Shown here: in pieces, positions 12,060 through 33,810 of the stretch
How the letters are laid out: every line of letters begins with the position of its first letter
Position numbering within the stretch: the stretch's first letter is position 1
Assembly (NCBI RefSeq): GCF_000143415.4
Contig: NW_003314396.1
Coordinates: 361,640 to 397,141, forward strand
Reading direction: 5' to 3'
Origin: Selaginella moellendorffii
Lineage: Eukaryota; Plantae; Lycopodiophyta
DNA length: 35,502 nucleotides
Position numbers and translations under genes: made by a program
Notes under the pieces: model-generated
Told to the model about the DNA's origin: nothing
Seen by the model: only the letters and a program-made list of their open reading frames with translations
The model's database searches: none

Positions 12060-12283
12060 TGTTATCCAGAGAGAGAGAGAGAGAGAGTACCTTCCCACTA
12101 CCAACGCTCTCTTCTCGTGCATCACTTTCCTCCCTGTCCTCAAAGGCATTTGAATTTTTTATGATCCCAAAGTCATGACTCTCCATTATTTAATCTCAAC
12201 CGTTCGATTTTGGCATATGCCCAGAATAAGCGTCCCCAGTATATGCTATTATTATACTGGCTCTTTCGTTAAATATATGAGTA
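12060..12283 (-). mobile_element. Helitron-like 5' terminal region, type A
   Basis: ~220 bp homologous to 27751-27973, including a (GA)n tract. Begins TACTCATATATTTAA on the minus strand, directly after a CTAG 3' end. Confidence 0.7.
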
Positions 12284-12309
12284 CTAGCTGGGATCCCAGC
12301 TCCACTGGG
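12284..12309 (-). mobile_element. Helitron 3' terminus (hairpin + CTAG)
   Basis: Minus strand CCCAG-TGGAG-CTGGG, 7-nt spacer, CTAG|T. Confidence 0.8.
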
Positions 12310-12391
12310 GGAGATAGTACACCAAAGAATAATAGATTATTTAACTTACATTGTTTTATTACATTCATTAAAAAAAACTTATCACCTATTT

Positions 12392-13587
12392 TGTAGCGCA
12401 TGTGATCATGGGATGAGATTTGGATATACTGTCACCGTGGATCCTTGGAACCTTGGGAGATAAATGGGGATAAAATAGCCACTAAGGGCTCTCTCATCAA
12501 GCAATTGCCCCTTTTCCAGTTGGCTTAAGGGGAGAGAGATAAGGTGCGCTACAGTTGGTATCGGAGCAAATGGCACGGGTTCGATTCCCATTGATTAGTG
12601 GCTACTTAAAAGTATAATATACCCTTGAGCAAGGTATATTCCTACCCCTAAATTTGAAATCGTACGTATTGGGCATCCATGTGTACGTCCTTCCTCTTGT
12701 GTGGAGTATCCACGGACGAAGGTATCCACCGTGGGACTGCGGTACGGGTGGATGACTAGTTGCCTCACATGGAATAGCTGGTCTACACAATGGAAGGATT
12801 GGTAGATTGAGTGCGGAAATGGAGGTGCTGGTTCCCCTTGGCTTAGTAGGGGTTGTTAGTCAATAGTCAATGAGGACATTGACATCTCTGAAGGGGGGGT
12901 GAGTGTAGCGCATGTGATCATGGGATGAGATTTGGATATACTGTCACCGTGGATCCTTGGAACCTTGGGAGATAAATGGGGATAAAATAGCCACTAAGGG
13001 CTCTCTCATCAAGCAATTGCCCCTTTTCCAGTTGGCTTAAGGGGAGAGAGATAAGGTGCGCTACAGTTGGTATCGGAGCCAAATGCTAAATATGGAATGG
13101 CCTTAGATTGCGAATTTGGACATGGGACGAACACCATTGTGTTCAGGCCGACCTCAACATTCCGTAGATATGCCAAATGAGCGAATCTAGACACTTTCCA
13201 TAAATAGCATTTGGGACCGAAACGAGACTAACACAAAGGGCGTGATAGCGAGGGTGTTTGGCAAACACGGTAAGCTATCATCTAGCGAATATTGAGGGAC
13301 TAGTCTCAATATTGCGGGGGTTCCCAACACTAGCAAGTGCAAGTCAACATCATGAGTTTCTCATCACCGTGTCAAGTATGCTTGACTTAATGACAACTTA
13401 GGATTTCCTTCCTTAGTGCCCTTCCGGTCTAAGTGCACATGTGCTGACCAGTTTCTCAACTAGCTTGGGCGGAGACCATAAAGGGAACCAGCAGTACCGA
13501 CCTCCTGCCGTCGTGGCAGTAAGGAGAGAGAGTCCGTAAGTACTAGTCGACAAGTATCTTTCGATACCCGAAGTCACATGCGCGACA
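12392..13587 (+). mobile_element. Composite TRIM: LTR-internal-LTR-PBS-second internal region-heterologous end
   Basis: Apparently identical 162-bp LTRs (12392-12553, 12904-13065; TGTAGCGCA...TGCGCTACA). PBS TGGTATCGGAGC follows both LTRs; PPT at 12891-12903. TATTT flanks at 12387-12391 and 13588-13592. The core 12392-13065 is firm; the right extension is less so. Confidence 0.85.
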
Positions 13588-14899
13588 TATTTGTAGGGAC
13601 ACTAAATGGCATTAGAGACTAAATGGCATTGGAGAGAATATATATTGAGGAAATGCTCAATAGTTCCTAGCAATAAACTGTTATGGATCAAAGATGAAAC
13701 ATTAGTTATAAACACAATATTGAATTCATATTCTTTGAGCTATAATAATATAGTGAGTGTGAATAAGATTAAACATATATTTAGTTTCTCATCCTATCAG
13801 AGTAAGAGGTTTTGAATAGCATGCATACTAAGTAACAAATATTATTTTTATGTGTTGATAGTGTAATAATTTTATTTTGAAATTTTAAAATAATTAAGCA
13901 TATTTGTCTTCATATGGAATACACAAGGCTTGGTTTGGCAAACCATTTTGACTCCAGGCCAAGAGCATTCACAAAATCCTCTCAGTTTTTTTGGAAGTAG
14001 ACATCTGAACACGTTGCATAGAGCATGACCAATTTCCAAGGACAGTGGAGGTTACAAAACCAACTCTATGCCTCATTTCAAGTGGCAGTGGCCTTGATGA
14101 TAGAACCATGTAAGATCCAGTTTATGGATTACATGGTTTAGGTCTATAGCAGCATCCGTCACAAGAAGAACATTGTTTTGGTTCAAAGTCCAAGACTGGA
14201 CTGGCTGATTCTGTAATGAATCTCTTCAACTCTTTAGAGGTCTCCCACTTTCCCAACCTGGTCTTCCACCGGGAACTTGATGTCCAGTCTGCTCCCGGTG
14301 GAATTGTGCAATTTGTTCCAAGCACACCGTCTTATGAACTTAGACAACATTCCTGGAAGAAAACACTTAAAATGAAACTATCCACCGTTGCAAAACATAT
14401 GTTAGAGAAAAGCTCGAGATCAAAGTAGTTGGTGTTGTTCATAACAAGGTAGGGATATTTTCCTGCATGTCTCCCTGCAGCAGAGAGCATTTTTGAGCCT
14501 TGGCATATCCTCCCAGATGACTGCCATGACCTTGATGCTATACGACTTGGTGCTCAAATTATCCTTGCTTGGAACTATAGCCACTACAGTCTCACCTGGA
14601 TCTGGGATTGAGCATTGCTGATCTCGATCATTTTTCTTATGCAAAGAAAAGACCCAAGATAGGAGAAGGATGTAAGCCAGTTTGCTGTTTCACTTCAAAT
14701 TTCTATCCGCAACCACACGCCAAGGACACACTCTTGCTAATTACTCTCACGAAAGCTCCTTCCTTGGCAGAGAGACCTTTGTTTCAACCAGAGGCATCTG
14801 ATAAATTTAGAAATTTTTTTCTCACGTCCACAGCGCTTCCTTGGCAACACAAACACAAAGAGCCATTCACTCAGAACTCAAAACCATCTCTTTACTATT

Positions 14900-15146
14900 A
14901 ACTCAAAACCAATCCATTCTCATAAAGAAATACAGTTTGCTCAGCCACCTTTCCTAAGCTTAACGATCGCCCTGTCTGATATAGGTGCACTGCTACATAA
15001 CTTCATCGGCATTCTTGAAGCAATAGTGCAGATCTCAGGGTAGAGCGCAATACATCCTGATCCAATACCCTTGACCTCCACAGCCACCAGTCAGGAAAAA
15101 GAGCGGCAAAAAAAAGGCATGTACCTGTAGAGATTGATAATTGTAA
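14900..15146. repeat. Direct repeat shared with 20841-21002 (Helitron internal segment)
   Basis: AACTCAAAACCAATCCATT...GGCATGTACCTGTAGAGATTGATAATTGTA is near-identical in both copies. This copy has an extra ~75-80 bp. Confidence 0.9.
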
Positions 15147-15155
15147 TTCATAATT

Positions 15156-31483: not shown

Positions 31484-32107
31484 AGGGCTTATACTGGGAG
31501 TAAATAAAAAATGCAAGTGCTCCTCAAAATAAAATGATTATATAAACCATAACCTTACAACTGTGTATATCAACTTTACGCTGGCAATGAAAACTCTGTA
31601 CTTAAGTTAACCAATTTCTATTAGACTGACATCAAAGGTTAGAATGTCTATGAAACGTGGATGACTTGGTTTTGAACTGGAATGAACCTGCTTCAAAACT
31701 AATTCGGACCAAGCTTACAAGTTTAATCCCACACTACCTTTGTTACGTGGCTTCAATGTTGATATCATTAACGAACTCCAATCACGGGCTTATAGGAATT
31801 GTGGTGGACAGTCTCTGCCCATTACTTACTCGCCCTAACTTACCTTCTTGATACTAAGTTTTCTTTTGATGACAAAATGAAAACGAATTCCCCTTGATGA
31901 ACACTGGAAAAGATCTCTTGTATTTTATTTATATTTTTTAACAGAGGAAAGGAGGTGACATTGCACTTTTTGAATCCTCAAATGAAATGGACATGTACCA
32001 AGAAGAAGTAAAGGTTTCTTAGAGCAATTTCCATATTATTTCATGAAAGGTCGTTGGCTATATTGCATAAATAATGGAAATTGCTAGGAGGTGTGTTTTA
32101 TTTTATG

Positions 32108-33295
32108 AAAGGTCGTTGGTTTTCTAGACACGAGCAAAAGAAAAAAAATTCTTGAACTCCCAAACAGCCCTCTGTTTTTCGCTCCTGTGCAACAGAAACC
32201 ACGTTAGCATCAGAGATCAAGAGAAATCCGGGAGAAATCCGTGACAGGGTGAGAAATCCGGGAGCATCAACCAGTGGGGAAGTTGTCACAGAGCTGGAGA
32301 TCGTGTTCTTCAGACTGTCCGCCTTTGACCTGTGCATGTGTCGCGAATGGCGATGAACAATCAACGATCCAGCCTTTTGTTTCTGCCACCAAAATCAAGA
32401 GAGTTGACAGCCTGAAAATGGTGGAGTCAGTTTCTCGCCACTAATTTGAATCTGCATTTCAAACAAGCAAGAAAACTGGAGAAGTCATCAGACTAAACAT
32501 GCGCTCATGATTCTTTCTAATAGCATCCCGAGAGTTTAGATACACGACTTTAGAGTGTTTACCCCAAAGGTCGTTGGTTTTCTGGACACGAGCAAAAGAA
32601 AAAAAATTCTTGAACTCCCAAACAGCCCTCTGTTTCTCGCTCCTGTGCAACAGAAACCACGTTAGCATCAGAGATCAAGAGAAATCCGGGAGAAATCCGT
32701 GACAGGGTGAGAAATCCGGGAGCATCAACCAGTGGGGAAGTTGTCACAGAGCTGGAGATCGTGTTCTTCAGACTGTCCGCCATTGACCTGTGCATGTGTC
32801 GCGAATGGCGATGAACAATCAACGATCCAGCCTTTTGTTTCTGCCACCAAAATCAAGAGATTTGACAGGCTGAAAATGGTGGAGTCAGTTTCTCGCCACT
32901 AATTTGAATCTGCATTTCAAACAAGCAAGAAAACTGGAGAAGTCATCAGACTAAACATGCGCTCATGAATCTTTCTAATAGCATCCCGAGAGTTTAGATA
33001 CACGACTTTAGAGTGTTTACCCCAAAGGTCGTTGGTTTTCTGGACACGAGCAAAAGAAAAAAAATTCTTGAACTCCCAAACAGCCCTCTGTTGCTCGCTC
33101 CTGTGCAACAGAAACCACGTTAGCATCAGAGATCAAGAGAAATCCGGGAGAAATCCGTGACAGGGTGAGAAATCTGGGAGCATCAACCAGTGGGGAAGTT
33201 GTCACAGAGCTGGAGATCGTATTCTTCAGACTGTCCGCCATTGACCTGTGCGTGTGTTGTGAATGGCGATGAACAATCAACGATCCAGCCTTTTG
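32108..33295. repeat. 458-bp tandem repeat, ~2.6 copies
   Basis: AAAGGTCGTTGGTTTTCT starts at 32108, 32566 and 33024. Copies are nearly identical. Confidence 0.97.
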
Positions 33296-33340
33296 CAAAG
33301 GGTATGCACACTCCCGCTGCTGCGTTCACCACCACAGAGA

Positions 33341-33448
33341 CACACAGACACACACACACACACACAGAGAGAGAGAGAGAGAGAGAGAGAGAGAGAGAGA
33401 GAGAGAGAGAGAGAGAGAGAGAGAGAGAGAGAGAGAGAGAGAGAGAGA
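33341..33448. repeat. (CA)n(GA)n compound microsatellite
   Basis: Seen directly; GA tract at 33367-33448. Confidence 0.95.
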
Positions 33449-33568
33449 TTACAGCTGCTCGATCGCCCTAAAAGTTTCACTTGATTTGGAGGGTCATCAA
33501 ATTCAAATTTGAAGAGTTGCCACCCCTTGGTACTTTGATCTATGCCATCTATTTGAATTTTTTGAATT

Positions 33569-33810
33569 TGAACCGTTAGATTATAAGCATATTCAGAAAT
33601 AATATTCTAAAAATGGAATAAAAGACGCCGGATGCCATATGCCAATAGCACGTTTAAATAAGGGAGTACTAGCAAAAGTCCCAGCTACGCTGGGAGCATT
33701 GTGTTTATTTCTGATATTTTAATAATTTCAAAGAGTGTAATTTTTAACATAATCATAATTATAAGATATATAGTTAAACATAACATAATATTTATATTAA
33801 AAATATCTTC
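33569..33810 (-). mobile_element. Helitron-like 3'|5' junction, type B
   Basis: Hairpin at 33680-33694, CTAG at 33669-33672, then TACTCCCTTATTTAAA on the minus strand. About 130 bp to the right match 21358-21500. Confidence 0.8.

Follow-up and report, generated by a model that had tools for sequence, protein, structure and literature searches.

A train of different Helitrons in Selaginella moellendorffii with junctions that recur at or just inside the 5' termini of the downstream elements

The window considered here is a stretch of 35,502 nucleotides from the genome of the lycophyte Selaginella moellendorffii (GL377700.1:361640-397141, assembly GCA_000143415.2), whose right edge is the end of the scaffold. 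The longest open reading frame of the region has 98% identity to a protein of S. moellendorffii, and the window was placed by the locus of the 530-aa member of that protein's cluster, which is the same as window 19087-35502 and stops where the scaffold stops. At least five different canonical Helitrons (V, W, X, Y/Z and Q; Table 1) are lined up head to tail in the window, all of them on the minus strand, and our preferred reading, to which we assign a probability of about 0.6, is that this train was built by repeated and oriented insertion at or just inside the 5' termini of elements that were already resident. The ends of the elements are real, the positions at which they are joined recur, and the pairings between ends are of independent origin. 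Within the train no host DNA separates one element from the next, in agreement with the initial annotation of this stretch, which had described almost none.

Hairpin-CTAG ends and element boundaries

A scan of both strands of the window for CCCAG-N5-CTGGG-N7-CTAG gave 7 matches against 0.04 expected, a number that none of 100 shuffles reached. The five minus-strand ends that had been reported from the initial reading, at 12284, 15156, 21358, 27974 and 33669, all carry the pattern with no mismatch, and a sixth end, with one mismatch and a terminal TTAG, lies on the plus strand at 16207-16232; a general scan of the window for a hairpin followed by CTRR yielded no additional credible end. The stems predicted for single-stranded DNA measure 5-7 bp and have only moderate stability, and short, moderately stable stems are usual for Helitron 3' hairpins. 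TACTC..TTTAAA stands directly behind CTAG or TTAG at 12284, 27974 and 33669 on the minus strand and at 16232 on the plus strand, while at 21358 the CTAG is followed by TCAA and then by TACTC, and at 15156 by unrelated sequence. The conserved start that was noticed earlier behind four ends is hence present, in one form or the other, at every end but 15156.

The two homology classes of junction that had been distinguished are recovered by self-BLAST, at 85% for class A (27766-28007 against 12068-12317) and 81% for class B (33602-33802 against 21294-21504), together with an inverted pair of tails (16004-16232 against 15400-15156, 83%) whose homology ends at CTAG. The likeness within class A is, however, essentially limited to the side of the 5' start, where the first 100 nt are 94% identical; upstream of the common hairpin, the 3' sides of 12284 and 27974 are 63% alike, which is within background. 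In ascending order the ends read A, C, B, A, B, the end at 15156 being of a third type that also occurs inverted at 16004-16232. The two classes do alternate, as had been pointed out, but with so few junctions the A-B-A-B pattern is indistinguishable from chance.

In the A pair and the B pair of the window alike, homology continues across the junction; the scaffold also has gaps, and it ends in AT-rich repeats. It could then be argued that hairpin-CTAG-TACTC is the interior of one dispersed repeat, or that the array is an artefact of assembly, an explanation which we hold to be very improbable. Eleven paralogous loci, gathered via one protein family carried as Helitron cargo and amounting with the window to 267 kb, allow the boundaries to be located. 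The initial annotation had reasoned that the middle of a mere repeat would show homology never ending at CTAG; the junctions are true 3'|5' boundaries between elements because the homology of paralogs breaks precisely at CTAG in three of them (L001, L005, L007) and precisely at TACTC in a fourth (L002). Over the final 569 bp of W, L001 is 96.7% identical as far as CTAG, apart from a 12-bp deletion in the hairpin, and diverges beyond it, L005 follows the tail of W at 94% up to CTAG (to 22128) with AT-rich non-Helitron DNA beyond, and at L007 17709 a B3 tail is joined to another element, an A5 start without 29 further letters. In L002 a B5 start that is 98% identical over 100 nt has unrelated DNA in front. 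The tails at 15156 and 16232 also lose their homology exactly at the end. An artefact is further opposed by like junctions on five other scaffolds, by the position of every junction of the window inside contiguous sequence (12284, 15156 and 21358 in one contig, 27974 and 33669 in the next), and by identities of 81-85%, which are too low for haplotype collapse. Both forms of this explanation are contradicted for the junctions, the join across 23418-23915 being excepted. A sister haplotype was sought through the 90% cluster of the window's annotated protein, which returned the paralogous copies L001 and L012 only and no allelic region.

The solitary 5' starts, A|TCATACTTC (L010 1003) and A|TCTTACTCC (L002 18398), and the starts at exact junctions open with TC, so that the terminus must begin three letters before TACTC; the two B5b starts, at window 21357 and L008 19832, have TCAA right behind CTAG. 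TC is present in every 5' end that was not shortened by a neighbour (TCATACT in L010, TCTTACT in L002, TCAA.. at 21357 and in L008), and four of the five starts in the window are without these first letters. TACTC as a non-canonical 5' end was ruled out, since the solitary and exact-junction copies begin with TC. As for the insertion site, a T stands behind 13 of the 14 clear 3' ends in the 267 kb and an A before both solitary 5' ends. Directly before AAAATCT|TACTCCC of L002, at 18396-18420 on the minus strand, there is a perfect 7-bp hairpin (TTCCAGC..GCTGGAA), which may be what is left of a Helitron 3' end, the CTAG being absent; the L002 copy would then not be truly solitary.

By their sequence features the elements are canonical Helitrons (Helitron1 type) and not Helentrons, because terminal inverted repeats are lacking: when the first 40 nt of W, X, L005 and L010 are compared with the last 80, inverted matches reach no more than 5-6 nt. 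The Helentron or Helitron2 class (short terminal inverted repeats, T-T insertion, often a fused apurinic/apyrimidinic endonuclease) was ruled out on this ground and on that of the RepHel open reading frame (ORF) of L010, in which no endonuclease domain was found. This ORF (3089-6973, 1294 aa, uninterrupted) matches Helitron_like_N at 4.7e-65 and PIF1 at 1e-56, and belongs to a 20.3-kb element at L010 1003-21295 that ends with hairpin-CTAG|T and is flanked by A and T; the element is a candidate for an active autonomous copy and a good reference. The window itself has RepHel only as fragments, at 22331-22555 and 35380-35502. A 20.8-kb relative occupies L005 1350-22128, with a P0003-like ORF and two genes, one MORC-like and one RPA70-like. 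Because this full copy has a B5 start and an A3 end, B5 and A3 are the two ends of one family.

Pairing of ends and the building of the train

The 3' ends were grouped by the sequence upstream of the hairpin. Group A3 comprises 27974 and the ends in L005, L008 and L001; group B3 comprises 21358, 33669, L005 1349 and L007; group C3 comprises 15156 and 16232; and group E3 has three ends, of which two are in L009 and the other is in L010. The likeness of the end at 12284 to C3 is no more than 66%, and to 27974 it is 63%. Nine of the 14 ends adjoin the 5' region of another Helitron, six at CTAG|TACTC (three letters inside the terminus), two at an exact CTAG|TCAA and one lying 29 nt further in; the remainder comprise one in a Helitron interior (15156) and four against other DNA. 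Seen from the other side, 9 of 11 5' ends are adjoined by a 3' end. The partners are mixed in both directions: downstream of B3 stand B5, B5b and A5, of A3 stand A5 and B5b, of C3-type ends A5 and D5, and of E3 B5, while upstream of A5 we find A3, C3-like and B3 ends, of B5 B3 and E3, and of B5b B3 and A3. Such promiscuous pairing at one nucleotide position means that the position was struck repeatedly and independently.

These counts bear upon the two element types, 5'B..3'A and 5'A..3'B, that had been proposed. The first is a real family, of which L005 has the full copy; the second is represented only by X, with its gap and its scrambled interior. A strict and non-random pairing of two types does not hold, the 3' ends at 12284 and 27974 falling into different groups and each 5' type being preceded by two to three 3' types. 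Insertion targeted to the terminus of another element, which had also been suggested, is the reading that fits best.

According to this preferred reading the stack would have been built via separate insertions, in each of which a newcomer enters an A|T at the very front of a resident copy; as the simplest reading, it asks for no more than ordinary Helitron chemistry. The usual entry would be between letters 3 and 4 (TCA|TACTC), with CTAG|TACTC as the result, and now and then the newcomer would enter between the host A and the initial T and leave CTAG|TCAA..., the upstream element being in either case the younger one. It is tempting to hypothesize that the transposase, which binds and nicks this 5' sequence in the donor, is attracted to the same sequence in the target, and that the interiors were scrambled by later deletions, inversions and end-bypass copying. 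That the Helitron transposase of this lineage treats the resident 5' terminus (TCA|TACTC or host-A|TC) as a preferred and nucleotide-precise landing site, with Helitrons piling into oriented trains, is a further step for which we consider the odds to be even.

Tandem Helitron arrays and perfect head-to-tail junctions have been described from bats and plants, and the A and B types of junction alternate in the window; a rolling-circle concatemer, or tandem amplification of one element or of an A/B heterodimer, is nonetheless most improbable. What successive units have in common is limited to 34-216 bp at the ends (81-85% identity in the self-BLAST), and their interiors are almost without homology, which argues against any concatemer, and the 3' sides of the two A junctions differ. 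The initial annotation had already judged simple concatemerisation insufficient, and rightly so on this evidence.

Another possibility is that a few pairs were formed once and then copied from the first 5' end to the second 3' end (end bypass), in which case each junction would belong to the inherited interior of a compound element. End bypass is documented to have produced compound Helitrons in bats (PMC4224331), and nested copies to have produced multi-terminus Helitrons in maize (PMC3288121); L005 840-1909 matches window 34166-33061 across the B3|B5 junction at 90.7% (94% on the V side, 87% on the W side). As a general account such co-mobilisation seems rather unlikely to us. Each 5' type is met by two to three unrelated 3' types at one nucleotide position, the 3' sides of the two A junctions share the hairpin only, and the process still needs an initial site-precise junction, so that it would add to targeted insertion without replacing it. 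Co-mobilisation of a pair is possible for V|W only and cannot be the general rule.

The order of arrival could also be reversed, the downstream element having entered next to a resident CTAG at a non-canonical G|T with loss of its first three letters. This order was considered for a pair of maize Helitrons (PMC2267711). Either order is compatible with the exact CTAG|TCAA junctions at window 21358 and L008 19831. Yet six junctions lack exactly three letters, and a T stands behind 13 of 14 ends, as it does in canonical A|T insertion. In the chemistry of HUH transposases and Helraiser, a covalent bond links the transposase to the first letter of the transposon; by analogy, a new copy should have a complete 5' end. 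We regard this reversed order as unlikely, more so than co-mobilisation.

Several observations weigh against targeted insertion. The loci were picked through a Helitron cargo gene, which makes the sample Helitron-rich by design, and the end at 15156 is followed by A instead of T and fits no simple insertion. The displaced TCA stubs that are predicted at the top of the stack are not visible in the window; the stack top lies past the scaffold end, and no convincing array of TCA or TCAA stubs was found beside 5' ends in the window and the 11 loci. In L005 the V|W junction is present again, homology extending over 0.5-1.3 kb to one side of it and over 0.6 kb to the other, so that this pair could have been copied as a unit. 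The solitary L010 has a TCA|T site that is nevertheless unhit, and the order of arrival is a deduction. The solitary L002, for its part, reads TCT and is without A|T, which fits the model as a single case.

Two candidate stubs were set aside: (TCA)3 at 35339-35347 lies within a repeat common to L007, and TCAATCAATCAATACTC at 5062 (5040-5075, minus strand), taken as a repeated TCAA stub before TACTC, has no Helitron 5' sequence behind it and is probably due to chance. If insertion was targeted, upper members of the stack should be polymorphic, the resident TCATACTC should be intact wherever the newcomer is absent, and one TCA-type stub should be present for each junction of the three-letter kind, at the 5' end of the top member of the stack.

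Known Helitron arrays and the meaning of the proposed targeted insertion

The closest precedent is a maize pair described in 2008, in which two different Helitrons of the same orientation are joined directly, the CTAG of one to the start of the next, and were shown to be separate insertions; entry of the newcomer at A|T is one of two routes that were proposed for it (PMC2267711). The Selaginella train resembles this pair in its different contents, single orientation and direct CTAG-to-start joins. It differs in that the maize case is a pair with an exact CTAG|TC, whereas here at least five elements stand in a row, most junctions are three letters inside the resident terminus, and the same junction position occurs on several scaffolds with different partners.

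The tandem arrays of the bat Myotis and of plant centromeres, as cited in PMC2267711 and PMC5876387, also have perfect head-to-tail junctions. They share with the Selaginella train the precise 3'|5' joins, the absence of a host A between elements and the single orientation. In those arrays one element is repeated by rolling-circle read-through, whereas the Selaginella units differ and have non-homologous interiors. According to PMC3288121, which cites Yang and Bennetzen 2009, maize Helitrons insert preferentially close to other Helitrons or within them. The clustering with their own kind is common to both, and nested or adjacent copies give rise to multi-terminus elements and chimeras according to PMC3288121 and PMC4224331. 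As described there, the maize preference is regional, neither nucleotide-precise nor tied to the 5' terminus, unlike the one proposed for Selaginella. The literature searched, outside of which two key maize papers of 2009 remained, contains no train of several elements whose junction recurs three letters within the resident terminus. Head-to-tail pairs and the clustering of Helitrons are already known, and the Selaginella train is most likely a sharper form of the maize habit.

Bacterial HUH single-strand transposons such as IS608 and IS91 pick, through their transposase, a target that resembles their own left-end cleavage sequence. A similar target choice would explain why a resident 5' terminus attracts insertions, although IS608 and IS91 belong to a different transposase family and host domain, and the reading of the target by RepHel is suggested here by analogy. 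The choice of targets by Helitrons and the building of multi-terminus chimeras of mixed content are poorly understood. A site-precise preference for the front end, if true, would explain the clustering in one orientation, the origin of compound elements and the existence of tens of kb of pure Helitron DNA. Trains would then be safe harbours, and factories for chimeric multi-terminus elements in which every 5' end is free to combine with whichever 3' end lies downstream. A direct test at the bench could also show if the transposase recognises its own left-end sequence in a target. For annotation the consequence would be that most 5' ends in this genome are without the TC that Helitron finders seek.

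Anatomy of the train

Table 1. Elements and other features of the train, with positions in the window.
Feature	Position	Strand	Remarks
V, tail of the uppermost element	33669-35502	-	AT-rich tail; B3 hairpin+CTAG at 33669-33694
W, 5,695-bp Helitron	27974-33668	-	B5 start (TACTCCC.., first three letters absent); A3 end
X	21358-27973	-	A5 start at 27973; B3 end at 21358
Assembly gap of 498 N, inside X	23418-23915	.	touches no junction
Y, 5' part of a B5b-type element	20842-21357	-	complete TCAATACTC right after the CTAG of X
Rearranged 5.7-kb block between Y and Z	15156-20841	.	inverted tails and a plus-strand start
Z, 5'-truncated continuation of the Y family	12284-15155	-	C3-like hairpin+CTAG at 12284
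Q, lowest element	9239-12283	-	A5 start at 12283 (first three letters absent); E3-type tail

Giant RepHel-bearing families of S. moellendorffii are the fairly likely source of V, W, X, Y/Z and Q, each of which would be a non-autonomous or broken derivative. The different cargo that had been attributed to the units consists mostly of pieces of giant master Helitrons, deleted and inverted in different ways, and not of separate captures of host genes. A Pfam scan of the 104 ORFs of at least 62 aa between 4500 and 35502 gave low-complexity matches only, and no host-gene cargo could be named.

The uppermost element, V, contains a gap at 34167-34290 and, at 35380-35502, an N-terminal RepHel fragment; its 5' end lies past the scaffold end, and it is homologous to L005 1-1349 at 78-94%. 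Below it, W retains the 5'-terminal 560 bp and the 3'-terminal 585 bp of the L005 family, the first 100 nt being 98% identical to L005 and the last 585 bp 94%. W is a deletion and inversion derivative of the giant family that is whole in L005. It carries a tandem repeat at 32108-33295, a 458-bp unit present 2.6 times at 98%, of which L005 (1674-1909) and L006 (527-831) match only about 240-300 bp. A 3-kb block of W (29017-32029) is 97-99% identical to L005, L006 and L012, but is inverted relative to its neighbours there. This inverted block holds the annotated ORF SELMODRAFT_430659 (530 aa), whose product has nine paralogs restricted to Selaginella and no Pfam domain; the family always lies upstream of MORC-like and RPA70-like genes.

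The interior of X is made of scrambled Helitron pieces in both orientations, including the RepHel fragment at 22331-22555, which is antisense. The assembly gap lies 2.06 kb from the 3' end and 4.05 kb from the 5' end of X, and the ORFs listed across it are composed of N and meaningless. A search for paralogs that bridge the gap found that only L010 matches both flanks: the left one (22625-23402) at 8948-9721 and the right one (23916-24092) at 8129-8305, in the opposite orientation. Both flanking contigs thus derive from one 1.6-kb part of the master element, which fits their being neighbours, and since they are not collinear in L010 an inversion or a palindrome is to be expected at the gap. 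The opposite orientation of the flanks suggests an inverted duplication or palindrome, which may explain the failed sequencing. Continuity of X across these positions is unproven, and a junction may be hidden there.

The junction between Y and X is exact, and an identical start is found at L008 19832 behind another 3' end. Y and Z belong to one family, contiguous in L002, in which Z (15145-13926) is 90% identical to 1525-2721; the two are probably a single element split by the block that separates them, although they may be two truncated copies. The block contains the minus-strand C3 end at 15156 with its tail (15156-15400), an inverted copy of this tail on the plus strand (16004-16232, ending in TTAG), and, directly behind that TTAG, a plus-strand Helitron start from 16233. 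The two facing 3' tails, about 600 bp apart and 83% identical, form a small inverted stack within the main one. A direct duplication borders the block (14900-15145 and 20842-21001; 160-245 bp at 95-99% identity, one copy having an 83-bp gap). This duplication is unlike the trace of a clean Helitron insertion, and the region concerned is tandemly duplicated in L002 (1216-1600).

The train reaches past 12060, where the initial annotation had let it begin, and includes a fifth element, Q, which runs from 12283 to about 9239 and whose tail stops before the hairpin, cut by a (TG)n run at 9202-9238. Below Q there are unrelated repeats and a fragment of a Ty3/gypsy element.

At one of the other loci, L007, a kinesin gene model covers the entire 21.8 kb (1-21835), 15.6 kb to the left of the window, and the Helitron pieces and the B3|A5 junction of that locus fall inside what must count as a kinesin intron. 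The Ty3/gypsy fragment of the window spans 794-4522, with RVT_1, gag and integrase SH3 matches, and is 90-94% identical to L009 2445-6895, one segment being inverted.

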